In this document: piece after piece, positions 3,857-64,000 of the stretch
How positions within the stretch are numbered: position 1 is the stretch's first letter
How the letters are laid out: each line of letters starts with the position of its first letter
Virus record (IMG/VR): IMGVR_UViG_3300032287_004484
Span: 226,275 to 290,274 of that record
Direction: 5' to 3' (one strand)
Length of the DNA stretch: 64,000 nt
Notes under the pieces: generated by a model
Told to the model about the DNA's origin: nothing
Databases searched by the model: none
Seen by the model: only the letters and a program-made list of their open reading frames with translations
Program-made: the position numbers and the translations under genes

Positions 3857-3914
3857 ATATAAATTATATAATATGAATTTATTAATGTTTAAAAATTAAT
3901 TAATTTCAGTGTTA

Positions 3915-8954: not shown

Positions 8955-9158
8955 ATGAATAATTATACTTATAAAATTGAATATAATCGTTATAATTTAG
9001 GTGATTTTTTAGTAGAATTTATAGATGGTAAAAAAAATAATGTTTGGATATTAGAAGATTTATTTAATTCAAGTGAAGTACTTGGTACAAAGCGTTATGA
9101 TGCAACTTTAAGAGCAAAGGAATATATAAGAAAAAATCATCCTGAATTATTACTATGA
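8955..9158 (+). CDS. small accessory protein with C-terminal tag (HPELLL)
   Basis: 67 aa; similar in size and ending to 60015..60215. Confidence 0.7.
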   Translation: MNNYTYKIEYNRYNLGDFLVEFIDGKKNNVWILEDLFNSSEVLGTKRYDATLRAKEYIRKNHPELLL

Positions 9159-9453: not shown

Positions 9454-10092
9454 ATGAATAAATTACAAATACTTACAATTAAAGATTTAAATAAACAAGA
9501 TCTAAAGAATAAAGATTTTGATCTTTTAGATATTAAAAAATCCATTAATTATGCAGCAGCTAGAAAAATAAGAATTAAAGAATTAGAACAAGAGGTTATT
9601 AAAGATGCAGACTTAGCGTTAAAATATGCTAGTTCAGTTATACGTGGAGAATGGTTAGAGGGCGAAGATATTATTAGTTCAAACATTAATGCTTCAACAC
9701 GTTACGCTAAACTTGTAATAAGTAAAAGATTTACAAAAGCTGAACCTTTAATTTTACAAGAATGTTATCCTACGTTATATTATGTAAGAACGATAATAAA
9801 ACAAAGATTTCCAGAAGGTGAACAAATAATAGCATCTAAACCAGATAGTGCTTATATATATGCTAAAGAATATATTTTTAGCAGATGGCCAGAAGCAGAA
9901 AAAACTATTAGTACAAATGCAGAGTATTCCTTTCTTTATGCTGAGTTTATTAATGATAAATTTCCAATGGCTCATAAGACAATTTTTACATCTTCTAATT
10001 CTGAATGGAGAAATAAATATCTTAATCTTCTTGAAAAGCTACGAATTAATACTCAAGAAATTAAAGATGAATATATTGAATTTTTATTATGA
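9454..10092 (+). CDS. alpha-solenoid repeat protein (about 24-aa YA..VI.GRW.EGE..I repeat), tagged
   Basis: About six internal repeats; ends YIEFLL. Confidence 0.75.
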   Translation: MNKLQILTIKDLNKQDLKNKDFDLLDIKKSINYAAARKIRIKELEQEVIKDADLALKYASSVIRGEWLEGEDIISSNINASTRYAKLVISKRFTKAEPLILQECYPTLYYVRTIIKQRFPEGEQIIASKPDSAYIYAKEYIFSRWPEAEKTISTNAEYSFLYAEFINDKFPMAHKTIFTSSNSEWRNKYLNLLEKLRINTQEIKDEYIEFLL

Positions 10093-10463: not shown

Positions 10464-10538
10464 AAAATATAAAGTTTTAATGTTTGAGTAATTGAATTTT
10501 TACTTAAACATTAAAACAACTTGGTATATAATAATAAT

Positions 10539-14208: not shown

Positions 14209-14561
14209 TCTAAATCCTCTTTGTTTATTTCCATATTTATAAAATCAAGTTTAGAAGTTAAACGTTCTTCAGATCTAAATTTACTTAGAAAAGTTTGAAG
14301 TGAAAAAACATAATTAAAATTTCCAGCATCAACATCAAAAGTAAAATAATCTGGATTTTCACATTGACCTTCACTGAAATAAGATTCTTTAATTCCTAAT
14401 CTATTGGCTTCTATTTTTGCTTGCTTTTTTAAAAGTGATCTTAAACTTTTCAAAGATAAATCTGTTTCTATTTTATAAAAAACAGGTAACTCTCTTATTA
14501 CGTCTAAATAGTAAAAAGTATTTTTTTTCATAGTTTTATCCTCTTTTTTTAAATCATCCAT
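14205..14561 (-). CDS. accessory protein, paralog of 13894..14208
   Basis: Shared FYY.D....VFYKIETDL motif. Confidence 0.65.
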   Translation of the reverse strand: MDDLKKEDKTMKKNTFYYLDVIRELPVFYKIETDLSLKSLRSLLKKQAKIEANRLGIKESYFSEGQCENPDYFTFDVDAGNFNYVFSLQTFLSKFRSEERLTSKLDFINMEINKEDLE

Positions 14562-14866
14562 TGTAATAATTTTTTTTCATCATACTTATTATTCTTTTTT
14601 AAAAATTCTATATAATCATCTTTATATTGAGATTTAAAAATAGTATGATGACCTTTTTCAAAAATATCTTCTAATATATTAATAGCATAAAAATAAGATA
14701 CGTATGCATCTTTAGAAATAACTTCTTCTCCTTCATCCCAAGCTCCTTTAATCATATACATAGCATAATAAAAAGATTGCTCAGCATCAGTAGCAATAAT
14801 TTTTTCTAGTTCTGTTATTCTTTTATCCATAGATAAACTTTTATGTAAAGCTTCAATAGGTGTCAT
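14549..14866 (-). CDS. solenoid-repeat family protein (ends LLQWMI)
   Basis: MTPIEAL...RITELEKIIATD..QSFYYA...IKGAWDEGEEVI. Confidence 0.75.
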   Translation of the reverse strand: MTPIEALHKSLSMDKRITELEKIIATDAEQSFYYAMYMIKGAWDEGEEVISKDAYVSYFYAINILEDIFEKGHHTIFKSQYKDDYIEFLKKNNKYDEKKLLQWMI

Positions 14867-21027: not shown

Positions 21028-21266
21028 TGATATTTTCAAAATTTGAGATCAATTAATTGAAAAATATTTTAAATATTTAAAAACATTAAAAATAAGTGAT
21101 CAAAATTTAATCAGTTTTCAAGTTTAAACATTCAAATATATTTACTATATAATAATAATAGGGAATATTTTTATTATAAACACATAATAGAGGAAAATAT
21201 TTTTGAATAGCGATATAATAACACTTAAAGATATTTATGAAATTACTAAAAACACTGGAAAACTGA

Positions 21267-21773
21267 ATGGCTTTTATGAACATGATTTATCAAACTTCTT
21301 ATGCTGAAGCAAAAAAAATTCTTAAAGATTGTAAAAAGAGTAAAAAAAGGGATCTTGAGAACGAAAAAAGATTATTAAGATATAAAGAGTATGCAATTTA
21401 TTATGCTAGTAATATTATTAAAGGTAGATGGGAAGATTTAGAAAAAAATTTTTTAAGATCAAATGGAAGAGTTAATTCTAAAGAAATCGTTCTTTATTGT
21501 CGTAGAGTAATAAAAAAAAGATGGATAAAAAGTGAAAAAAAGATTTTATTATATTCTGATGCTTCTTATTATTATTCTCTTTATATAATAAAAGGTAGAT
21601 GGGAAAAAGGAGAAAAAAAAATATCTAATAGTCCATATTATTCTTTTTTATATGCTAAGCATGTTTTAAAAGATTATTTTGAATTAGGAAATGAAATTAT
21701 TTTAGATTCTGACTATGCTAACGATTATAGACAATTTTTAATTGATATAAATAAGGTAGAATATTTATTGTGA
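21267..21773 (+). CDS. solenoid-repeat family protein (VEYLL)
   Basis: Repeats YYASNIIKGRWEDLE, YYYSLYIIKGRWEKGE. Confidence 0.75.
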   Translation: MAFMNMIYQTSYAEAKKILKDCKKSKKRDLENEKRLLRYKEYAIYYASNIIKGRWEDLEKNFLRSNGRVNSKEIVLYCRRVIKKRWIKSEKKILLYSDASYYYSLYIIKGRWEKGEKKISNSPYYSFLYAKHVLKDYFELGNEIILDSDYANDYRQFLIDINKVEYLL

Positions 21774-24626: not shown

Positions 24627-24757
24627 TTGTAACTATTATATAATTATTTTAGATAAGTGTTTAAACCTAAAATTCTGTATAGGATATTCTTTTGGGTTTA
24701 GTCACTATTAAATTTTTAGTTTATTATTTAACTAGATAAATAAAAAGAGGCAAAATT

Positions 24758-26372: not shown

Positions 26373-26398
26373 GCCATCTTAGGATGGCATTTTTTTTT
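26373..26398 (+). terminator. intrinsic terminator
   Basis: GCCATC-TTAG-GATGGC then T-run. Confidence 0.75.
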
Positions 26399-26686
26399 AA
26401 ACATAAGTAATTTTAAATTCTATAATAAATAAAGGAATTTAAAATTGAATAATAAGAAAATTTTAATGCATCTTATTTCAACTTATGGATCACTAAGTCA
26501 CAATCAAAATCAAAAAATAATAGATGGTTTTTTTAATCAATCAAAAGATATTTTTAAAATTAAAGATTTTATAGAATATTATAATTCTAACGCTAATAAA
26601 CCTATTAATGATTATGCTTTATCCATGTATTTTAGATATATGAAGTGAACATTTTAAATTTTTAAATAATTTTATACAGGTGACAA

Positions 26687-41980: not shown

Positions 41981-42105
41981 ACTATTCTTCTCCTATATAT
42001 TAATATAATAACTATTTTTCTAATATGATGTCTAAACCTAAAAAAGAAACAATAGAACTATTAGGTTTAAACACTTAACTCTATTGCTAATATAATAATT
42101 TTACT

Positions 42106-53461: not shown

Positions 53462-53842
53462 ATGAGAAAGTCAACAAGAAATAAAACAACTTATTCAAGA
53501 GCTCAAAGGGCTTTAGAAATATGTCGTGAGTATAACAAAAGAATCCATAAACTTGAAAAAATAATTGCATCTGAAGAAGATACCGCTTATGTTTATGCTT
53601 TAGACGTAGTAGGAGGATCTTTTCCAGAGGGAGAAGCAATTATTCTTAAAAATCCACAACTTGCAACAGAGTATGCTTTTTATGTTTTAGATGCACCCTT
53701 TGAAAAAGGACATCCAGTTATTTTTAATTCAAAAAATGATCAAGACTGTATAGATGATTATGTGGATTTCTTAATTGAAAAAGGATATAGTAAGGAAAAA
53801 ATTGATTCGCTTTTAATTCAATATTCTCATCAATTAATATGA
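53462..53842 (+). CDS. solenoid-repeat family protein
   Basis: RIHKLEKII...YVYALDVVGGSFPEGE. Confidence 0.75.
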   Translation: MRKSTRNKTTYSRAQRALEICREYNKRIHKLEKIIASEEDTAYVYALDVVGGSFPEGEAIILKNPQLATEYAFYVLDAPFEKGHPVIFNSKNDQDCIDDYVDFLIEKGYSKEKIDSLLIQYSHQLI

Positions 53843-54625: not shown

Positions 54626-54785
54626 GGTTTTTTCTCCGGTTTTAAAATTTATACTAATAGAATAATATTTTTTGTAAGTATTTTATAAACCCAAAAAATT
54701 ACTATTAAAATACGCTATTTTTTTAGGTTTAAACATTTATTTTATATTTGTATATAATTTAATTAGAAATTTTATATATAAATAT

Positions 54786-54992
54786 ATGGATATTAAAAAA
54801 AGAAAAATCATATGGGAATCACTAGTAGTAGACATAAACAAGAAAAGAATTTTTTATAAAACTGAAGATCACTATCATCATTTCTTAAATGTTGCGTTTA
54901 AAGATTTGTTGATACTAGAGAAAGATGCTCCAGAACATTATAAAATTTTTCAAGAAATTTTATATCGTAATTATGGGGAGTGGATAATATGA
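54786..54992 (+). CDS. small tagged protein (YGEWII)
   Basis: First gene of a long tagged-gene array. Confidence 0.65.
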   Translation: MDIKKRKIIWESLVVDINKKRIFYKTEDHYHHFLNVAFKDLLILEKDAPEHYKIFQEILYRNYGEWII

Positions 54993-55378
54993 CCCCTAGA
55001 CAAGCACTTGATAAAATTATTAAAAACAATAAAAGATCTTGTAGATTAGAAAAAATAATTGCACAAGATCCAGAATCTTCTTTTCTTTATGCTTGTCATT
55101 TAAACGAAAGATTCGTTCAAGGAGAAGAAGCGATAATCATTAGTGTATATCATACTCATCACTATATTGAAGAAATAGTAAGGGCTCCTTTTCCAAAAGG
55201 AGAAAAGATTATTTCCACAGAACCATTTTATTCTTATCGTTATGCAAAAAATATATTAAAAAATGTATTTCATCTCGCTCATCCAGTTATTTTTAAATCT
55301 TCATTTAAAAATGATTATATAAATTTCTTAAAATCTATTAATTATGATCTTAATGAAATAGGAGAATGGTTAATATGA
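54989..55378 (+). CDS. solenoid-repeat family protein (IGEWLI)
   Basis: MTPRQAL start at 54989. Confidence 0.75.
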   Translation: MTPRQALDKIIKNNKRSCRLEKIIAQDPESSFLYACHLNERFVQGEEAIIISVYHTHHYIEEIVRAPFPKGEKIISTEPFYSYRYAKNILKNVFHLAHPVIFKSSFKNDYINFLKSINYDLNEIGEWLI

Positions 55379-55691
55379 CTCCTAAAGAAGCCTATATTAA
55401 ATGTTATAATGAAAATCGTAGAATACCTGAATTAGAAAATATTATTGCTACTGATTCATATTATTCTTATCGTTATGCTAGTGATGTAATTAGAGGAAGA
55501 TGGGAAAGCCGTGAAAAAAATATTGCTACACATTCAGAATATTCTTATTATTATGCTCATTATGTAATTAAAGGTCCATTCAATTTATGTCATCCAATTA
55601 TTTTTAGTTCTATTTATAAAAACGATTATATAAACTTTTTAAAATCTATCAATTATGATCTTAATGAAATAGGAGAATGGTTAATATGACT
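55307..55691 (+). repeat. 74-bp direct repeat pair (55307-55380 and 55618-55691)
   Basis: Both encode KNDYINFLKSINYDLNEIGEWLI* plus the next ATG; four differences, all synonymous. Confidence 0.9.
55375..55689 (+). CDS. solenoid-repeat family protein (IGEWLI)
   Basis: MTPKEAY start at 55375. Confidence 0.75.
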   Translation: MTPKEAYIKCYNENRRIPELENIIATDSYYSYRYASDVIRGRWESREKNIATHSEYSYYYAHYVIKGPFNLCHPIIFSSIYKNDYINFLKSINYDLNEIGEWLI

Positions 55692-56049: not shown

Positions 56050-56333
56050 GAAAATTGTTTATTGTAACAATTAATGATATGTATAAGAAAATTAGTCAAG
56101 ATGAAAAATTTTTTAATGGCAATTTAATTCATACGATATATACATATGATGATTATAATATTAATGAAGTAGCATCTTATTTATCATTATCAATTGATTT
56201 TATTAAAAAGCATACAATCTTTATTGATGAAAATGTTTTTACTAAAATAAATACTTATGGAATTATGAAAAAACACCATATTAATATTAAGGATTTTTTT
56301 GAAAAAATATCTTTAGAAGAACACTTAATATGA
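56046..56333 (+). CDS. small tagged accessory protein (LEEHLI)
   Basis: ATGA-coupled start at 56046. Confidence 0.65.
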   Translation: MRKLFIVTINDMYKKISQDEKFFNGNLIHTIYTYDDYNINEVASYLSLSIDFIKKHTIFIDENVFTKINTYGIMKKHHINIKDFFEKISLEEHLI

Positions 56334-56800
56334 CTCCTAAAATAGCTTTTTTTATTTCTTCATACGAAAATAAGAGATCTCCTAAATTAGAAAATATTAT
56401 TTCTACTGACGCTAATTATTCTTATCAGTATGCTCTTCACGTTGTTAAAGGTAAATGGAGAAAAGGAGAAAATATAATTATTACAAGTCCTTATTATTCT
56501 TACTTATATGCCCTTCATATTGTTAAAGGTAAATGGATAAAAGGAGAAGAAGTAATTTCTAATGATTCAGAGTGTTCTTATCATTATGCCAAAGATATAA
56601 AAATAGGAAGATTTAAAAAAGGAGAAAAAAGTATTATTAAAAATCCAAAATATTCTTACTGGTATATAAAGTACGTTGTCAAAAAACCATTGCCACAATT
56701 TAATAAAATAATTTTTAATTCTAAATTTTTACAAGACTATATACAATTTTTACAAAACAACAATTACAACATTAACAAATTTTCTGAATATATGATATAA
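56330..56800 (+). CDS. solenoid-repeat family protein (FSEYMI)
   Basis: Four YA.H.VKG.W.KGE repeats. Confidence 0.8.
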   Translation: MTPKIAFFISSYENKRSPKLENIISTDANYSYQYALHVVKGKWRKGENIIITSPYYSYLYALHIVKGKWIKGEEVISNDSECSYHYAKDIKIGRFKKGEKSIIKNPKYSYWYIKYVVKKPLPQFNKIIFNSKFLQDYIQFLQNNNYNINKFSEYMI

Positions 56801-57221: not shown

Positions 57222-57259
57222 TTTTAGGTTTAAACACTTATTATAAATTGAATTATAAT
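57222..57259 (+). promoter_or_regulatory. type example of the repeated promoter
   Basis: TTTTAGGTT-TAAACA-17 nt-TATAAT. Confidence 0.8.
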
Positions 57260-57281: not shown

Positions 57282-58175
57282 ATGAATAAATATAACTATA
57301 AATACGATCACATAATAAAAATTGATGACCAAATTTTAAAAGAAGATTTTTACGAAATTGTAAGAAAGCATAAAGTTAATAGAAAAAGAGATTTAAATTT
57401 AGAGGAAAGAATTTTAAAGAGTCAAAATCCTTTATTAGCTGTTTTCTATGCTAGAGAAGTTGTAATGGATAGATGGATAGAAGGCGAAGATATAATTTTT
57501 AACTTTCCTTCTGATCAATCTATTTATTTTTATTTAACTTTTTTGATAGAAAATAAAGTTAGAGATCTTGAAGATTTATTTCCAAAATTAGAAAAATGTA
57601 TGGTAGAGTTTAAGGATTTTATGGCTATTAGATATTATATCTCTAGTGTAATTAAAAGAAGATGGAAAGAAGGTGAAGACGCTATTATTGAATGTAAATC
57701 TCTTAACGATATTAATTGGTATTCTAAATATTATATTAAAGGTAGATGGAAAGAGGGAGAACAAGTTTTTTTAGAAGAAATAACAAATATAAACTTTTCT
57801 AGCCATTTGCACTTCCACCTTGTTTACCAATTATCTTATTATATAGATAAAATCGCTAAATGTAAAATTGACGATATTGATAAAGAGATTATTAAAAATA
57901 TGAAATATTTTTGCGAGAAATATCCTCATGTAAATATTTTTAGATATATAAATGGAGCACATCCAAAAGGTTGGGAAGAAGCAGAAGAGTTTATTGTTCT
58001 TGATGCTAACCTTAGTGTTATGTATGCAATGAAAATTATAAAAAGACCTTTTGTAAAAGCACATCAAAATATCTTTAGTTCTAAAACAGATAAAAGAATT
58101 ATAAATCGCTATACAAATTTTCTCAATAAATTAAGTAAAAAGAAAACAGTAAACTTCTCAGAGTTCTTAATTTAA
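57282..58175 (+). CDS. long solenoid-repeat family protein (FSEFLI)
   Basis: About eight repeats (VMDRWIEGE, IKRRWKEGE, IKGRWKEGE). Confidence 0.75.
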   Translation: MNKYNYKYDHIIKIDDQILKEDFYEIVRKHKVNRKRDLNLEERILKSQNPLLAVFYAREVVMDRWIEGEDIIFNFPSDQSIYFYLTFLIENKVRDLEDLFPKLEKCMVEFKDFMAIRYYISSVIKRRWKEGEDAIIECKSLNDINWYSKYYIKGRWKEGEQVFLEEITNINFSSHLHFHLVYQLSYYIDKIAKCKIDDIDKEIIKNMKYFCEKYPHVNIFRYINGAHPKGWEEAEEFIVLDANLSVMYAMKIIKRPFVKAHQNIFSSKTDKRIINRYTNFLNKLSKKKTVNFSEFLI

Positions 58176-58177
58176 AA

Positions 58178-58708
58178 ATGAAAACTTTATATTTATTAGA
58201 AAATAAAAAGATAAAAGAGAAATATAATAATTTTCTAATTAAAAATAATGTTTTTTATTCTTATCAATATTATCTTGGATCAGGAGATGAAGGAGACGCT
58301 TTTATGGTTTCTGATTCTGAAATAAGAGGAGTTATAAAATTAACAACTAGAAGATTAGAATATAAGATTTCTAAAAAATTAATTAAGAATCAATATCTTA
58401 ATCTTTGTACAGTATATGATTGTAATATTTTAAGTCCTAATGAATTATATGTTATTTATAAAAAGTTTTATTTTGTTAATTCTATAACATCTGATTTAGT
58501 TGATTTTGCTTTAAAAAATAAAGATTTAAATAATTTTGGACTTATTGGTTTTGAATTAAAAAAGATTAAAAGTCAATTAAAAGAATTTGGATTAAGTGAT
58601 GGAGGTGATTTATGGGGTGGTAATGTAGGATGGGATAAAAATAAATTAGTTCACTTTGATATAGATGAAACTGTTTATGGAACGTATAAAGAAAGTTTTT
58701 TAGAATAA
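58178..58708 (+). CDS. minimal protein-kinase-like-fold enzyme
   Basis: LGSGDEG (Gly loop), VIK, DLWGGNV (catalytic loop), FDID (metal binding). Confidence 0.65.
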   Translation: MKTLYLLENKKIKEKYNNFLIKNNVFYSYQYYLGSGDEGDAFMVSDSEIRGVIKLTTRRLEYKISKKLIKNQYLNLCTVYDCNILSPNELYVIYKKFYFVNSITSDLVDFALKNKDLNNFGLIGFELKKIKSQLKEFGLSDGGDLWGGNVGWDKNKLVHFDIDETVYGTYKESFLE

Positions 58709-58753
58709 ACACTTTTATATTTTGTATATATATTATATATAAAGGAATATTAA

Positions 58754-58945
58754 ATGACAAAAAAAGAAGCAACTAGAATTTTAAACATTAGATTAGAAGC
58801 TCTTAATGAAGCAATTAAAAGAAAGGCAATTAAAACTGATATTACTGGTAAAATAATTGATCAATCAGTTTTTGATTACCTTAATGAATTAGAGGAAAGA
58901 AGAAAAGCACCTCCAATAAATTGGATTAAAAGAAATGAATTTTAA
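58754..58945 (+). CDS. excisionase-like HTH protein, tandem paralog 1
   Basis: TKKEATRILNI...LEERR. Confidence 0.65.
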   Translation: MTKKEATRILNIRLEALNEAIKRKAIKTDITGKIIDQSVFDYLNELEERRKAPPINWIKRNEF

Positions 58946-58961
58946 AAGGATAAAAAAATAA

Positions 58962-59180
58962 ATGGAAACAACAATAGAAAAACAAACAATAACTAAAAAA
59001 GAGGCATGTGATATTTTACAAATTAAAAAACACACATTAAATAATCTTATTAAAAGTAAAATAATATCTTCTTTTAACGAAGAAGTTATTTTTTCTTCTG
59101 TTTTTAAATATAAAAAAGAATTAGAAGAAAGAAGATCAATTAACAAACCAATGTGGATAAATAGAGGCGGATATGGTTGA
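58962..59180 (+). CDS. excisionase-like HTH protein, tandem paralog 2
   Basis: TKKEACDILQI...LEERR. Confidence 0.65.
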   Translation: METTIEKQTITKKEACDILQIKKHTLNNLIKSKIISSFNEEVIFSSVFKYKKELEERRSINKPMWINRGGYG

Positions 59181-59508
59181 ATCTAAAAAAGAAACTTACT
59201 TATATATGGGAATATCGTTAGATAAATTTTCTAATGATCCAACAGATAAAATTTCCATGATAGACTTTTATAATTCTTTTAATCAACAAATATATTCTCA
59301 TTGTTCTACAAGTTTTAAAAATAAAGAAAGATTCACGTTTCAAAAACTTGGAGATAACTTTACTTTTGAAGAATGGAGAACTGGACATGATATTATTATT
59401 CCTATTACAAAAGAAAAATTTGATATGATAAAACAGATTAACATTCTTAATCATAAAAGTTTAAAAAAGTTTTTAAGATCGTTTAGTTTTGAGGAGTACA
59501 TTATATAA
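59173..59508 (+). CDS. small tagged accessory protein (FEEYII)
   Basis: C-terminal tag. Confidence 0.7.
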   Translation: MVESKKETYLYMGISLDKFSNDPTDKISMIDFYNSFNQQIYSHCSTSFKNKERFTFQKLGDNFTFEEWRTGHDIIIPITKEKFDMIKQINILNHKSLKKFLRSFSFEEYII

Positions 59509-60018
59509 ATGATAAAAATATTAATTGCTAATACACATTCTAAAATAGATTTTGAATCAGTCGATAAATCAGAAAAGAAAGAATTTATTAAAATGCTGAA
59601 AGAAAAATTTACAGTTAGAAATCCATCGCTAGAAAGAAACCCTATGGTAATAAGAGGACTAATGAGTGCTGATCATTGTTTTTACGACGTTGAAAACTCT
59701 ATTCTTCCAACTGGTTTAGTTCCACATCTTAGAATTTATTCTAAACAAAATAATTTTCAAATTGAAATTAAAGACTTTAGAAAATTTCCAAAACAAAACC
59801 AAAACATATTAGATGGGATCAACGATAAACAAATTAAAATGGGAATTCACGAAGCAAGGGATTACCAAATAGATGCTCTAGCTGATTTAGTTAAATATCG
59901 TGGAGGAATAATGGAGGGAGGAACTGGAATGGGTAAATGTCTTGGTAAATCAACAGAGATTGAAATAGAAGTTGATGATGACTTTTATTCATTTCTAATA
60001 AAACATAATTTTATATGA
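59509..60018 (+). CDS. uvsW: UvsW-like SF2 helicase N-fragment fused to a 26-aa split-intein IntN
   Basis: ARDYQ (Q motif), GGTGMGK then CLGKSTEIEIEV...; Cys1 at 59938. Confidence 0.9.
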   Translation: MIKILIANTHSKIDFESVDKSEKKEFIKMLKEKFTVRNPSLERNPMVIRGLMSADHCFYDVENSILPTGLVPHLRIYSKQNNFQIEIKDFRKFPKQNQNILDGINDKQIKMGIHEARDYQIDALADLVKYRGGIMEGGTGMGKCLGKSTEIEIEVDDDFYSFLIKHNFI

Positions 60019-60215
60019 AAAATCAATATACAATAGAATATGATAAGATGATTAAAAATTACCAAGTCAGTTGTGTAGGAAAATTTAACTTTAGTGCATC
60101 GCTAGGATATTTAAAAAATCTTGATAACCAAAGCATGTGGAAAGAAAAAAAATTAGAATATTATTTTGAACTTCTTGATTGGGTAGAAAAAGAACACCCA
60201 GAGTTATTAATATGA
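60015..60215 (+). CDS. small tagged protein (HPELLI) between the helicase halves
   Basis: ATGA overlap with the IntN stop. Confidence 0.7.
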   Translation: MKNQYTIEYDKMIKNYQVSCVGKFNFSASLGYLKNLDNQSMWKEKKLEYYFELLDWVEKEHPELLI

Positions 60216-60550
60216 ATGATTCAGAATGGGATGAAATGATTGCTTGGTGTCCAACACAATTAAGTAAAAGAGTTTATGTCGAAGGAATAGAGTTAATTCT
60301 TTATTTAAGATGGAGATGGAATGATCCGTTCACTTATAACATTTATATTGAAGAAGATAAAAAAGAATTAGAAGAACTTCTAAAAATAGGGATGTTTCAT
60401 TATGATTTATTTAATAAGTATAATCGTTGGTATTCACAAAAAGATTTTGATAAAGATAAAATAGAAAGGGATGCAGAAGATATTTGGTATAACTTCGAGA
60501 AGTCAAGGATAGAAAAAATTTTAAAAGATAATCCGCATTTAATAATTTAA
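60212..60550 (+). CDS. accessory protein (NPHLII) between the helicase halves
   Basis: WCPTQ...YLRWRW motif; start 60212. Confidence 0.65.
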   Translation: MNDSEWDEMIAWCPTQLSKRVYVEGIELILYLRWRWNDPFTYNIYIEEDKKELEELLKIGMFHYDLFNKYNRWYSQKDFDKDKIERDAEDIWYNFEKSRIEKILKDNPHLII

Positions 60551-60583
60551 AGAATTTTTATTTTTAAATCATAAAAATAAATT

Positions 60584-62116
60584 ATGAAATTTATTGAAAA
60601 ATTAAATCTTCTTGTTGAAGGTATAGGTTCAACGATTAATTTTAATTCCACTCAAATTGGTCTTAATATAGGAAAAGATGATTCATTTTTAAATTTTATT
60701 GATAATGCTTATTTAATGAAACAGATAAAATTTTTTATTAACGAAGAGATAGATAGATTTAATAAAATTTTTCCTAACAATAAAAAACAAAAAATTAAAA
60801 TTGAATTTAATCAAACGAAGGAAAAAAATGAATCGTTAGAAATGGTTGAAAAATTTATAGAAGACGATAAAAATGATAAAGCAGCGCTTCACAATTTTAA
60901 AATAAAATATATTAATCATATAGTAGAATGGTTTAAGGATGATAAAAATTTAAATAAAGATTATAAAAAGCATTTTGAAAAAGAATTACAAAATTCTAAT
61001 TTTTGGGCCTTTTTTAAAAGTGAAAGAGGCGAACTTTATTTAAGCGATGTAACTACGCTTAATAATATCAATGCAGAAATAATTCATGATTTAGTTTTAC
61101 ATCTTTTTGCTAATCAAGAAGATATGTTTTATTTTTCAATAAGTGATAATGGATATGGATTTAATGATCCTAGCGGTTATTCACCAGAAAGTTTATTAAA
61201 TGAACTATATGCTTTACAGTCTGATCATATGATTTTTTATTATAGTTATGAAGTTCAAAAACCTTTTATAGACGTTTTTTATAAAGATCTTTCTGAGATT
61301 CAATCAAAAAATCAATTAGAAACAGTTCTTAATTTCTTTAAAGATGAAAAAATAAAATATTTAATACAAAGACAGTTATTTAATGAAAAAGTTGTTTACG
61401 GAAAACTCTTAATTGATATTTTTTCAGTTGTTGAAAAACATAAACAATATTTTCAAAACTCATATTCTTTTTTACAAAAACATAAAGATTCTCAAGGTAA
61501 AATAGTTAATTTTAAAAGATATAGTTATCCATTTATTCAAAACGTTATTTCTTCAATTCAAAAACGTCAAAGTAAAATTCCAACGTGGAAAGATTTTAGA
61601 ACATACTTTAACGATTACCCAGCAATACAAATATTATTTAAAAAAGATAAATATCTAGATGATAAAAAAATTAGTGATCATCCTGAACTTAATGATATTA
61701 ATCAAATATTTTATAAAGCATTAGATTCTGGTCAAAGCTTAATGAAAACAAGTTCTACATCTGGTAATACTAAAAGAAAAGAAGAGATAGTAGAACTTCC
61801 TAATTTTTTAAAGAGGATGAGAGGTAAAAGTAAAAACGACATTGAAGCAGCTATGTTGAAAATACCAGATAAAGAAAAAAGAGAAAGATTATTTAAAAAA
61901 TATATTCAATTTCAAAAATATACTAATCAATATGAAATAGGTCAAATAGGAAAACAATTAGTTGGTAAAAAAGAAGTTTATAATTTTCAAAATACAATAG
62001 ATGTTATATTAGATAAAATTTTTAAATTAGTTAGAAGCAATAAATTTACTAATAATAAAATTTATTATGATATGATAGAGAAAAAAATAAAAATAGAAAA
62101 GGAAAATAATCCTTAA
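60584..62116 (+). CDS. putative internal head protein between the helicase halves
   Basis: MKFIEKLNLLVE|G; ATCATAAAAATA at 60568-60579; paralog of 3915..5033. Confidence 0.6.
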   Translation: MKFIEKLNLLVEGIGSTINFNSTQIGLNIGKDDSFLNFIDNAYLMKQIKFFINEEIDRFNKIFPNNKKQKIKIEFNQTKEKNESLEMVEKFIEDDKNDKAALHNFKIKYINHIVEWFKDDKNLNKDYKKHFEKELQNSNFWAFFKSERGELYLSDVTTLNNINAEIIHDLVLHLFANQEDMFYFSISDNGYGFNDPSGYSPESLLNELYALQSDHMIFYYSYEVQKPFIDVFYKDLSEIQSKNQLETVLNFFKDEKIKYLIQRQLFNEKVVYGKLLIDIFSVVEKHKQYFQNSYSFLQKHKDSQGKIVNFKRYSYPFIQNVISSIQKRQSKIPTWKDFRTYFNDYPAIQILFKKDKYLDDKKISDHPELNDINQIFYKALDSGQSLMKTSSTSGNTKRKEEIVELPNFLKRMRGKSKNDIEAAMLKIPDKEKRERLFKKYIQFQKYTNQYEIGQIGKQLVGKKEVYNFQNTIDVILDKIFKLVRSNKFTNNKIYYDMIEKKIKIEKENNP

Positions 62117-62157
62117 TATTGTTTAAACATATAGTTATAGTTGAAATATAATTATAT

Positions 62158-63675
62158 ATGAAAAAGGTAAAAATTAAAATAGGTAAACTATTTGAAGCTA
62201 TTGAAAAATATGAAAAACATAACTTTTATACAGATGAAGAATATTATCCAAAAACAGAAATTAAATTAAAAGATAAAAATGGTGATTTTCAAAAAGTTCC
62301 AGCACTAATAAAAAAACGAGATCAAATCTTAAAAATTGTATTACAAAATAAAGATCTTCTTAAGGTAGGTACAAATCATATTATTTGTACCCAAAATTGG
62401 GAAGAAAAAAAATGTAAAGATTTAAACCTAAAAGATAAACTCATTAAAAACAATGCAAGTCTAGTTGGCATAGAAAGCATAAAACTAGAAGATGAAGAAG
62501 ATGTATTTGATCTTCAAATAGATAGTGAGGATCACTTATATTCTGATGCCAAAGGATATGTTCACCACAATACTTTTATTATGTCTATGGCGTGTAGTCT
62601 TTATAATACATCTAAAATTTTAGTTCTTTTTAATCGTACAGAACTTCTTTTTCAAACACGAGAAAAATTTGTTAAAGAGTATGGATTCAAAGAAGATGAA
62701 GTTGGTATAATTGGTGGCGGATCTTATGATGATTCGTGTAGAATAACACTTCTAACAACACAAAGTTATCAAAATATCTTTCATCTTTTTCCAGATATAA
62801 AAGTTATTATTACTGATGAGTGTCACGAAACTGGTAGAACGTCAACAGCAGAGAAGATTATTTATTCTTGTCAAAGCGCTTCTATTAAAATAGGTTTGTC
62901 AGCAACTGTATCAGTAATTGAAAATCCTTACGAAAAAATGAAATTACATGGTAACATAGGTCCAATCATACATAAGGTACCATACGATAAATTACGTGAT
63001 ATGGGAACACTAGCAACAGTATCAGTAACTATGTATAAAATAGGTGTTATAAATTCTATACCAATAATTGGATCTTGGAATGATGTTTATGAAACAATAA
63101 AAATTAAAAAACCAGAAGATATAGAGATTTATGAAAAATTAAATTATGAAATCGTTAAAGAAGGTAATAACATAAGTGCTAGAAAATTTATTTGTTATGG
63201 TGATGAAAGCAATTTATATATTTATAATTCCACTAGAAATGAACTCATTGCTAAAATAGCATCGCAAAAAGAAAGAGTTCTTATCCTATTCACTAAGTTA
63301 GCACATGGAAGAGAATTATTAAAACTTATTCCACATGGCATTTTAATTAGTGGTGATGATGATCGTTACGCTCGTGAACAAGCTAAACAAAAAATAAAAG
63401 ATGATCTAAACACAGTAATTATTGCGAGTTCTATTTTTGATGTCGGAGTAGATATACCAGCAATTAAAACACTTATCCTAGCTGGTAGTTCTGTAAGTAA
63501 TGTTAGAGTCATGCAAAAGATAGGTAGAGCAACTAGAAAAGATTTAAACACTCTTAAAGAAGACGCTGAAATAATTGATTTCATGCAATATGATAATCCT
63601 TTATCTTTAAAGCAAAGTAAAAAAAGAAAGAAGATATACGAAAATTTATTAAAGGTTCCTGTAACTTTAATATAA
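62158..63675 (+). CDS. uvsW: 138-aa split-intein IntC fused to the UvsW-like helicase C-fragment
   Basis: GTNH (block B), VFDLQI (block F), YVHHN|T (block G, ends 62571); extein has TDECH, SAT and IASSIFDVGVDIP...QKIGRATR. Confidence 0.92.
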   Translation: MKKVKIKIGKLFEAIEKYEKHNFYTDEEYYPKTEIKLKDKNGDFQKVPALIKKRDQILKIVLQNKDLLKVGTNHIICTQNWEEKKCKDLNLKDKLIKNNASLVGIESIKLEDEEDVFDLQIDSEDHLYSDAKGYVHHNTFIMSMACSLYNTSKILVLFNRTELLFQTREKFVKEYGFKEDEVGIIGGGSYDDSCRITLLTTQSYQNIFHLFPDIKVIITDECHETGRTSTAEKIIYSCQSASIKIGLSATVSVIENPYEKMKLHGNIGPIIHKVPYDKLRDMGTLATVSVTMYKIGVINSIPIIGSWNDVYETIKIKKPEDIEIYEKLNYEIVKEGNNISARKFICYGDESNLYIYNSTRNELIAKIASQKERVLILFTKLAHGRELLKLIPHGILISGDDDRYAREQAKQKIKDDLNTVIIASSIFDVGVDIPAIKTLILAGSSVSNVRVMQKIGRATRKDLNTLKEDAEIIDFMQYDNPLSLKQSKKRKKIYENLLKVPVTLI

Positions 63676-63754
63676 GGTTTAATTTTTGGGTTAATACATC
63701 TAATTAATTCTATATTACAATACTATTATAGAAATTTAATTAGGAGCAGATACT

Positions 63755-64000
63755 ATGTTCGATACAAAAGAATATAAAAAACAATACTATGAAGAAAATA
63801 AGGATAACTTAAAAAAATATCAAAAACAATATTATAAAAAAAATAAAGAACAAAGTAAACAATACTATGAAGAAAATAAGGATAAGATTAAAAAATACTA
63901 TGAAGAAAACAAGGATAAGATTAAAATTTTCTATGAAGAAAATAAGGATAACTTAAAAAAATATCAAAAACAATATCGTGAAGAAAATAAGGATAAAATA
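63755..64000 (+). CDS. YYEENKDK-repeat protein, possibly a homing endonuclease N-terminus (truncated by window)
   Basis: AGGAG SD, own promoter at 63685, tandem YYEENKD(K/N) repeats. Confidence 0.55.
   Translation, partial: MFDTKEYKKQYYEENKDNLKKYQKQYYKKNKEQSKQYYEENKDKIKKYYEENKDKIKIFYEENKDNLKKYQKQYREENKDKI

Follow-up and report, generated by a model that had tools for sequence, protein, structure and literature searches.

The stretch of DNA analyzed here (the window) comprises the final 64 kb of the 290,274-bp viral contig IMGVR_UViG_3300032287_004484 (guanine-plus-cytosine (GC) content 23.8%), the source being a jumbo phage of 290 kb and 24% GC; the subject is a helicase gene that lies in two pieces on one strand of a single locus, with the parts of a putative split intein at the break. 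The first piece, the N-gene (59509-60018, + strand, 169 amino acids (aa)), encodes a 143-aa N-extein (59509..59937), which is the helicase N-terminal domain up to the Walker A residues G-T-G-M-G-K, and the 26-aa N-terminal intein fragment (IntN; 59938..60018 with the stop codon, coding part 59938-60015): the sequence GGTGMGK is followed by the tail CLGKSTEIEIEVDDDFYSFLIKHNFI and the stop, and this tail contains Cys1 (Cys144 of the N-gene, directly after GMGK; its codon begins at nucleotide (nt) 59938), the strand TEIEIEV and the helix DDFYSFLIK. The second piece, the C-gene (62158-63675, + strand, 505 aa), opens with the 138-aa C-terminal intein fragment (IntC; 62158..62571), in which the strand KVKIKI, the helix GKLFEAIEKYE, block B (GTNH) and the blocks F and G (DVFDLQIDSEDHLY...GYVHHN) can be recognized with the help of the family alignment, and continues from nt 62572 (T139-F-I-M-S-M) as the 367-aa C-extein (62572..63675 with the stop codon), whose Thr+1 completes Walker A. 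The two genes are separated by 2,139 nt (60019-62157) that hold three open reading frames (ORFs) of the same strand. When all ORFs were re-derived, the coordinates and junctions given in the initial annotation of this DNA proved correct to the base; no further intein of the same family was found elsewhere in the 64-kb window.

Both genes match the phage DNA helicase family phrog_16 (positions 66-233 by the N-gene, E=6.5e-13 for the N-extein; positions 303-609 by the C-gene), Pfam assigns ResIII (3.5e-13) and Helicase_C (2.3e-7) to the C-gene, and the motifs of a superfamily 2 (SF2) helicase can be read in the sequence: GMGK+T (motif I), DECH (motif II), SAT (motif III) and QKIGRATR (motif VI). 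The uninterrupted relative P0013 (510 aa, i.e. 143 + 367) is 76% identical to the N-extein in its residues 1-143 and 87% identical to the C-extein in its residues 144-510; it reads GGTGAGKTFIMSM across the junction, compared with GGTGMGK + TFIMSM in the window, and thus represents an exact empty site within Walker A (in its DNA: ...GGTAAA|ACTTTT...). Indeed, excising the 26 + 138 intein residues and joining the flanks rebuilds the Walker A motif (GxGKT) exactly. The best PDB match of P0013 was T4 UvsW (2oca; E=2.9e-18, both 510 aa), nearly equaled by an XPB-type ATPase (3.8e-18), and the N-terminal fragment of T4 UvsW (1rif) aligned to P0013 residues 14-256. The C-gene shares only 25-28% identity with homologues from cultured phages that bear the annotation UvsW or RNA-DNA helicase, and a tblastn search of cultured phages with the N-gene gave no match. 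In consequence of this low identity and of the equally good scoring of the XPB-type protein, "UvsW-like SF2 helicase" is a fair description of the predicted product that does not establish orthology to UvsW. Distant homologues of the helicase (P0041, P0046, P0050, P0062, P0064, P0026) carry contiguous LAGLIDADG-type inteins at other points, one site being three residues closer to the N-terminus within the P-loop (TG|SGKT) and another in motif II (DE|CH); the helicase family has thus been invaded independently at several sites. Two short proteins, P0010 and P0011, resemble the helicase N-domain over its first ~105 residues only, and possibly represent truncated or rearranged forms of it from other lineages.

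A contiguous counterpart of the intein is present at the same site (GMGK|C...HHN|S) in P0095, a helicase homologue of 736 aa that is 35-36% identical to P0013. Its intein has a length of 170 aa: the window IntN aligns gap-free to residues 1-26 (13/26 identical) and the window IntC, with its residues 4-138, to residues 34-170. The AlphaFold2 model of the P0095 intein, calculated with the family alignment, reached a mean predicted local distance difference test score (pLDDT) of 97.3 and a predicted template modeling score (pTM) of 0.90. In a Foldseek search with this model all top matches were inteins (TFIIB Mvu and Pho RadA with a template modeling score (TM) of 0.75-0.76; VidaL with a TMt of 0.78); solved inteins overall gave TM values of 0.67-0.78, CatC also being found by the fold search. 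At the sequence level, an IntC profile built from six relatives was searched against 1.84 billion cluster representatives and retrieved 204 proteins at E<=0.001 (90 at E<=1e-10). The family profile, a 135-sequence alignment built from these matches, found solved inteins in the PDB: gp41-1 (4.5e-10), VidaL (6.7e-10 and 2.2e-8), PolB16 (1.2e-7), Npu-type DnaE (1.3e-7) and CatC (2.8e-7). The residues expected to act in splicing are conserved: the block-B His and the terminal Asn are invariant in 135/135 family sequences, all 17 contiguous family members as well as the N-halves of relatives start the intein with Cys1, and the His-Asn ending is present in 138/139 family matches (+1 residue Thr in 108, Ser in 29).

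Several results weigh against this interpretation. The Pfam model Intein_splicing scored the C-gene with merely E=0.091, a phmmer search of the PDB with the single IntC sequence found no intein, and the six-sequence IntC profile reached only E=0.06-0.16 there; recognition of the intein hence depends on the 135-sequence family profile. The high-confidence Hedgehog/intein (HINT) fold comes from a homologue ~40% identical and not from the window intein itself; the window IntC alone, modeled by AlphaFold2 with the shallow six-sequence alignment, gave a pLDDT of 62. Relatives have T, S or G at the Thr position of block B (the His is kept), and Cys1 paired with Thr+1 is a less common combination of nucleophiles. 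Both halves are seen together in one locus and on the same strand only in the window and in the related loci L003 and L007; no N-half is present within 6.5 kb (L005) or 3.9 kb (L006) upstream of the C-gene. All evidence is computational, and splicing is predicted from it. With these points taken into account, the feature is still very probably a functional trans-splicing intein: the helicase is read here as split by a naturally split class-1 intein at GK|T of its Walker A loop.

According to the proposed mechanism, two polypeptides would be made, the 169-aa N-extein-IntN and the 505-aa IntC-C-extein. The 26-aa IntN, supplying Cys1, the first beta strand and the short helix, would dock on the nearly complete 138-aa IntC and complete the HINT fold. 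The chemistry would be that of the standard class-1 pathway: Cys1 would form a thioester, the N-extein would be moved to the hydroxyl group of Thr+1, the terminal Asn138 would cyclize and free the intein, and the O-to-N shift would yield a 510-aa helicase reading GTGMGKTFIMSM. Since neither half alone possesses a complete P-loop, helicase activity should need both products and their splicing. Alternatively, the halves might still bind each other and no longer splice, with the result of a non-covalent two-chain helicase held together by the HINT fragments, or of cleavage only. Splicing is a prediction from sequence, the block-B Thr is variable in close relatives, and purifying selection would equally be expected of a pure docking module, all of which would be compatible with such a loss. 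For docking only, however, neither Cys1 and Thr+1 nor the block-B His and the terminal His-Asn would be needed, yet all are kept in every relative and across the family, and ATP binding would probably be prevented if a domain as large as 164 aa remained within the P-loop (GK...T); a non-splicing complex is accordingly regarded as improbable when compared with the trans-splicing intein.

The gene lengths are strictly conserved. The N-genes of the relatives P0006-P0009 (82-99% identical) are exactly 169 aa long and contain a conserved IntN, the C-genes P0001-P0005 and P0012 measure exactly 505 aa, and both lengths are kept in at least five related metagenomic lineages. Pairwise ratios of nonsynonymous to synonymous substitutions (dN/dS; Nei-Gojobori method; window, L003, L005, L006, L007 and L012) amounted to 0.06-0.12 for the N-extein, 0.07-0.23 for IntN, 0.08-0.28 for IntC and 0.05-0.11 for the C-extein, at a synonymous divergence (dS) of about 1 (~0.5-1.5 in most comparisons). 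The intein evolves 2-3 times faster than the helicase, yet it is clearly constrained. These low ratios in all four segments argue against a decaying helicase pseudogene that was broken by foreign DNA and carries intein-like ends as functionless remnants. Such decay might be suspected from the gap of unrelated genes, which varies between relatives, and from the truncated or rearranged N-terminal helicase fragments in metagenomes (P0010, P0011). It is largely refuted by dN/dS values of 0.05-0.28 at a dS of about 1, by the exact lengths of 169 and 505 aa without frameshifts or internal stops, by a conserved promoter-like motif before the C-gene and by the position of the break precisely at the intein boundaries, and is hence considered very unlikely.

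Joining at the RNA level had been named in the initial annotation as a finding that would overturn the intein interpretation. A search of 58000-64000 for Rfam families (E<=1) returned none, group I and group II introns included, apart from one match at chance level. Continuity restored by an intron or by RNA trans-splicing, or an interruption that is a mere assembly artefact, is moreover difficult to reconcile with an insertion that is in frame at both ends and encodes the complete set of intein motifs, and with the independent assembly of the same arrangement in several samples and projects; this explanation is scarcely credible. The claim that the helicase is broken at Walker A by a split intein whose removal rebuilds GMGKT is supported by the empty-site allele, the contiguous intein at the same site, the catalytic residues, the HINT fold, the selection and the absence of an RNA intron.

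Natural atypical splits have been described at two positions of the intein fold: S1 after strand beta-2, as in VidaL (IntN 16 aa) and PolB16 (15 aa), and S2 after helix alpha-1, as in AceL-TerL (25 aa) and GOS-TerL (37 aa) (PMC13014065). The model of the P0095 intein shows a strand (residues 8-12), a helix (14-22, corresponding to DDFYSFLIK of IntN), a loop (23-32, the block of lowest confidence), a further strand (33-36) and a further helix (38-49), the last two corresponding to KVKIKI-GKLFEAIEKYE at the opening of IntC; based on the alignment to this model, the break of the window intein falls in the loop after the first helix. Comparison with the VidaL and AceL-TerL inteins rests on PDB profile alignments. 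In these, the IntC start of PolB16 (strand and helix, ..KIDIKSLYDSLAKKYD) aligns with that of the window (KIKIGKLFEAIEKYE), the window IntC starts ~10 residues before the onset of the VidaL alignment, and CatC residues 6-111 match profile positions 25-138, that is, only after the GKLFEAIEKYE-type helix. On the IntC side the split thus appears S1-like, at the same place as in PolB16 and near that of VidaL; this assignment, taken from profile alignments, is approximate, also because the extra IntN helix (P0095 residues 14-22) has no counterpart in the minimal fold.

The intein shares with VidaL (PDB 6vgv) the short IntN, the long IntC with blocks B, F and G, the phage or metagenomic origin and the class-1 type with Cys1; VidaL was among the best profile and structural matches of the window intein family, a similarity detectable only with the family profile, and differs in its C-terminus (SHN versus HHN), the +1 residue of the window intein being Thr. 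The PolB16 OarG intein (PDB 8cpn) likewise combines a short IntN with a long IntC bearing these three blocks, is equally of phage or metagenomic origin, has an IntC start that aligns with that of the window, and differs in having Ser1 and Ser+1. Compared to both, the window IntN is lengthened to 26 aa by an extra, family-specific helix (DDFYSFLIK), and KVKIKI is a strand of IntC. AceL-TerL, GOS-TerL and the consensus intein Cat (PDB 6dsl) resemble the window intein in IntN length (25-37 versus 26 aa) and in their occurrence in phage genes from metagenomes. In contrast, the IntC of Cat begins only after the helix equivalent to GKLFEAIEKYE, which in the window belongs to IntC, the split points being therefore different, and the host protein of these inteins is the large terminase instead of a helicase.

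The space between the halves is occupied by gap gene 1 (60015..60215, +, 66 aa), which belongs to a family of small proteins encoded in many copies and has the tail ..EKEHPELLI, gap gene 2 (60212..60550, +, 112 aa), which has no family match, and gap gene 3 (60584..62116, +, 510 aa); no function is assigned to the latter two. The stop of the N-gene overlaps the start of the 66-aa ORF as ATGA, and the 66-aa and 112-aa ORFs overlap likewise. None of the three genes matched Pfam, PHROGs, NCBIfam, PADLOC or the PDB, and no endonuclease domain was found in them, which bears out the earlier statement that the gap holds no recognizable endonuclease. The label "CTS-type gene" given to the 510-aa ORF could not be verified, as no family match was obtained; its leads in the protein atlas all lay below 0.9, a level where chance matches are common. 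The possibility that this gene is a diverged homing endonuclease related to the genes in other gaps of the intein family was rejected, since phmmer revealed no similarity.

Gap size and content change between close relatives: the gap measures 2.1 kb in the window, 5.54 kb in L007 and 5.67 kb in L003, the last two holding >20 small genes, and in L008 no C-gene is present within 5.8 kb downstream of the N-gene. An 86%-identical copy of the 510-aa gene, with a paralogue beside it, precedes the C-gene in L006, and a 66%-identical homologue of the 112-aa gene lies outside the gap in L003, downstream of the C-gene. The 66-aa gene family (~60-80 aa, ATGA overlaps, conserved tail ..WLKENHPELLI) amounts to 81 copies in six related loci, and its tandem arrays of 14-23 genes occupy the space between the intein halves in relatives. 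Only two copies are present in the window (60015-60215 and 8955-9158); further ones lie in L003 (2414-6986 and 11934-13068), L007 (2558-6657), L008 and L012. The IntN tail had been likened to the tails of such tagged small-gene families, a resemblance that was not borne out: a hidden Markov model (HMM) built from the C-terminal 24 residues of the 66-aa proteins did not report the window IntN, and no other IntN scored more than 2.3 bits with it, whereas the highest-scoring of 2,000 shuffles reached 4.1 bits.

The IntN tail is rather a trait of the intein family, as its helix recurs in contiguous members and in other split IntNs. A degenerate DNA pattern for the C-terminal motif identified 34 further viral loci (IMG/VR), and 16 of these 34 have an N-half upstream on the same strand; in these 16 loci the IntN is 21-42 aa long, lengths of 26-28 aa being the commonest, and the pattern GxGK|CL..xE.x.. 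with a D-x-Y/F-x-F/L helix after it is found without exception. The contiguous members P0104, P0194 and P0205 are devoid of the helix, so that the fold does not need it. A functional IntN of ~15 aa, as suggested in the initial annotation, is thus possible; yet the tail is conserved and, judged by the substitution ratios, under purifying selection in the window lineage.

Among the best 150 cluster representatives of the 204 profile matches, IntC is located at the N-terminus of the protein in 125, as in split C-halves, and ~17 are contiguous. The C-exteins are all P-loop nucleoside triphosphatases (NTPases): ResIII/DEAD helicases (23), Clp-type AAA_2 (22), AAA_5 (19), AAA (15), RecA (10), DnaB (5), PhoH (4) and others. 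According to these searches, GK|T/S is the insertion point of the intein family in many P-loop NTPases, and split members predominate. In other split members the gap comprises 35-113 nt or 0.85-1.23 kb, and six of the seven longer gaps examined contain just one gene, in either orientation, all six genes belonging to the same family and sharing a C-terminal ..YD..IIE(F/Y)(D/H)G..H.. motif (L024 2452-3630(-), L032 4162-5241(-), L033 1574-2722(-), L025 7510-8604, L026 2651-3622 and L021 10599-11093). The products have helix-rich repeats, one of them shows a weak DUF559 (Vsr-like) match, and the family may represent a homing endonuclease. In L013, the start of the IntC gene P0075, a split helicase homologue, is overlapped by a gene (1-468) for a TnsA-like endonuclease of the PD-(D/E)xK type, whose Pfam match (1.5e-7) exceeds the curated cutoff.

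The other family members thus combine the layout of fractured genes (PMC2677866) with an atypical split. Like the fractured genes (Dassa et al. 2009, PMC2677866), the window locus concerns a DNA-metabolism enzyme of a phage whose gene is interrupted by a split intein, the two halves lying in one locus and in the same orientation. The fractured genes differ in their canonical splits (IntN of 88-105 aa) and in their eight enzyme types, among which UvsW-type helicases are absent; one terminase locus has an unusually long C-part (122 aa), and one locus (gp41-7) is without endonuclease (PMC2677866). Unlike in those genes, the gap of the window holds three genes without endonuclease signature and changes its size and content between close relatives. 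With the P-loop inteins (Novikova et al. 2016, PMC4760082) the window intein shares the insertion site: in ATPases and helicases, the P-loop is a recognized intein hot spot (DnaB-b, MCM-a, RFC-a). Those inteins are mostly contiguous and encoded in cellular genomes, whereas the window family is mostly IntC-first and, in the 34 loci examined, was found on viral contigs (IMG/VR).

The order of events may have been the following: a contiguous P-loop intein would have received an endonuclease gene in its variable loop and persisted as two trans-acting pieces, and the window lineage would subsequently have lost the endonuclease gene while other genes accumulated in the tolerant gap. Short-IntN natural split inteins, fractured phage genes and P-loops as intein hot spots are already known. 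New are the intein together with its host protein, the Cys1/Thr+1 pair, the extra IntN helix, the size of the family and the replacement of the endonuclease by variable cargo, the novelty at the family level being uncertain. VidaL-type inteins are reportedly also present in helicase and UvsX genes, which weighs on the latter point. It is proposed only tentatively, and with considerable doubt, that a large clade not yet described as such has been encountered: class-1 phage inteins for GK|T/S, ~5/6 of the clusters being split near the N-terminus, with a docking helix in an IntN of 21-42 aa and, in the window lineage, with the endonuclease replaced by expanding and contracting arrays of small genes.

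With regard to expression, the motif TTAAACA-N14-18-TATAAT is present nine times in the window (0.42 expected; 0/100 shuffles reached nine): 3863-3892(-), 10504-10532, 21124-21153, 24635-24664(-), 26397-26426, 42067-42096, 54729-54758, 57230-57259 and 62123-62152. In eight of these copies, an ATG of the same strand follows after 5-39 nt, and the motif is likely a phage promoter class with very short leaders. The copy at 62123..62152 (+, N17 spacer) ends 5 nt before the ATG of the C-gene, and five relatives with different upstream genes show no change in either block; transcription of the C-gene probably starts at a site of its own. The copy at 57230..57259 (+, N16 spacer), 22 nt before the ATG at 57282, heads the string of tightly packed genes that contains the N-gene, and no motif of the N-gene's own is present between this copy and the N-gene. 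The assumption of separate promoters for the two halves was consequently supported for the C-gene and not for the N-gene. Sites of the generic sigma-70 type were as frequent as expected (37 versus 37.0), and no convincing terminator was found between the halves, one weak hairpin being located inside the 510-aa gene. As one motif class appears to serve both halves and read-through is possible, nothing points to differential regulation of the two. On inspection by eye, the gene starts read here were not preceded by a recognizable Shine-Dalgarno sequence.

Only a handful of natural atypically split inteins have been characterized (AceL-TerL, GOS-TerL, VidaL and PolB16; PMC13014065). Inteins of this kind are prized because the short IntN can be made synthetically for protein labeling and semisynthesis. 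The window locus adds a well-supported candidate with a Cys1/Thr+1 pair, for which splicing is predicted, and a family of >100 divergent natural variants, each with a matching N-half, that could be mined for fast and mutually orthogonal pairs. If an IntN core of 12 residues were to suffice, as hinted by the contiguous members without helix, very short natural IntN tags would become available. The locus further illustrates that the halves of a split intein need not stay adjacent (gap of 2.1 to >5.7 kb in close relatives, filled by unrelated cargo), with the predicted consequence that an essential recombination helicase would depend on two products being made and spliced; it is an example of a split-intein gap turned cargo site and not a new principle.

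In the vicinity of the two genes, a pair of adjoining small paralogues is located upstream of the N-gene (58754-58945 and 58962-59180; 63 and 72 aa, 44% identical) and belongs to a 12-member family in related loci. Directly 3' of the C-gene, the ORF 63755-64000, which is cut by the window end, starts with YYEENKD(N/K).(K)KY repeats and has no Pfam match; its homologues (387-395 aa) adjoin the C-gene in relatives as well (L005 8066-9253, L003 10105-11268). In the remaining window, BLASTP clustering revealed a paralogous family of eight ORFs (9454-10092, 14549-14866(-), 21267-21773, 53462-53842, 54989-55378, 55366-55689, 56330-56800 and 57282-58175), more copies of which are present in related loci.

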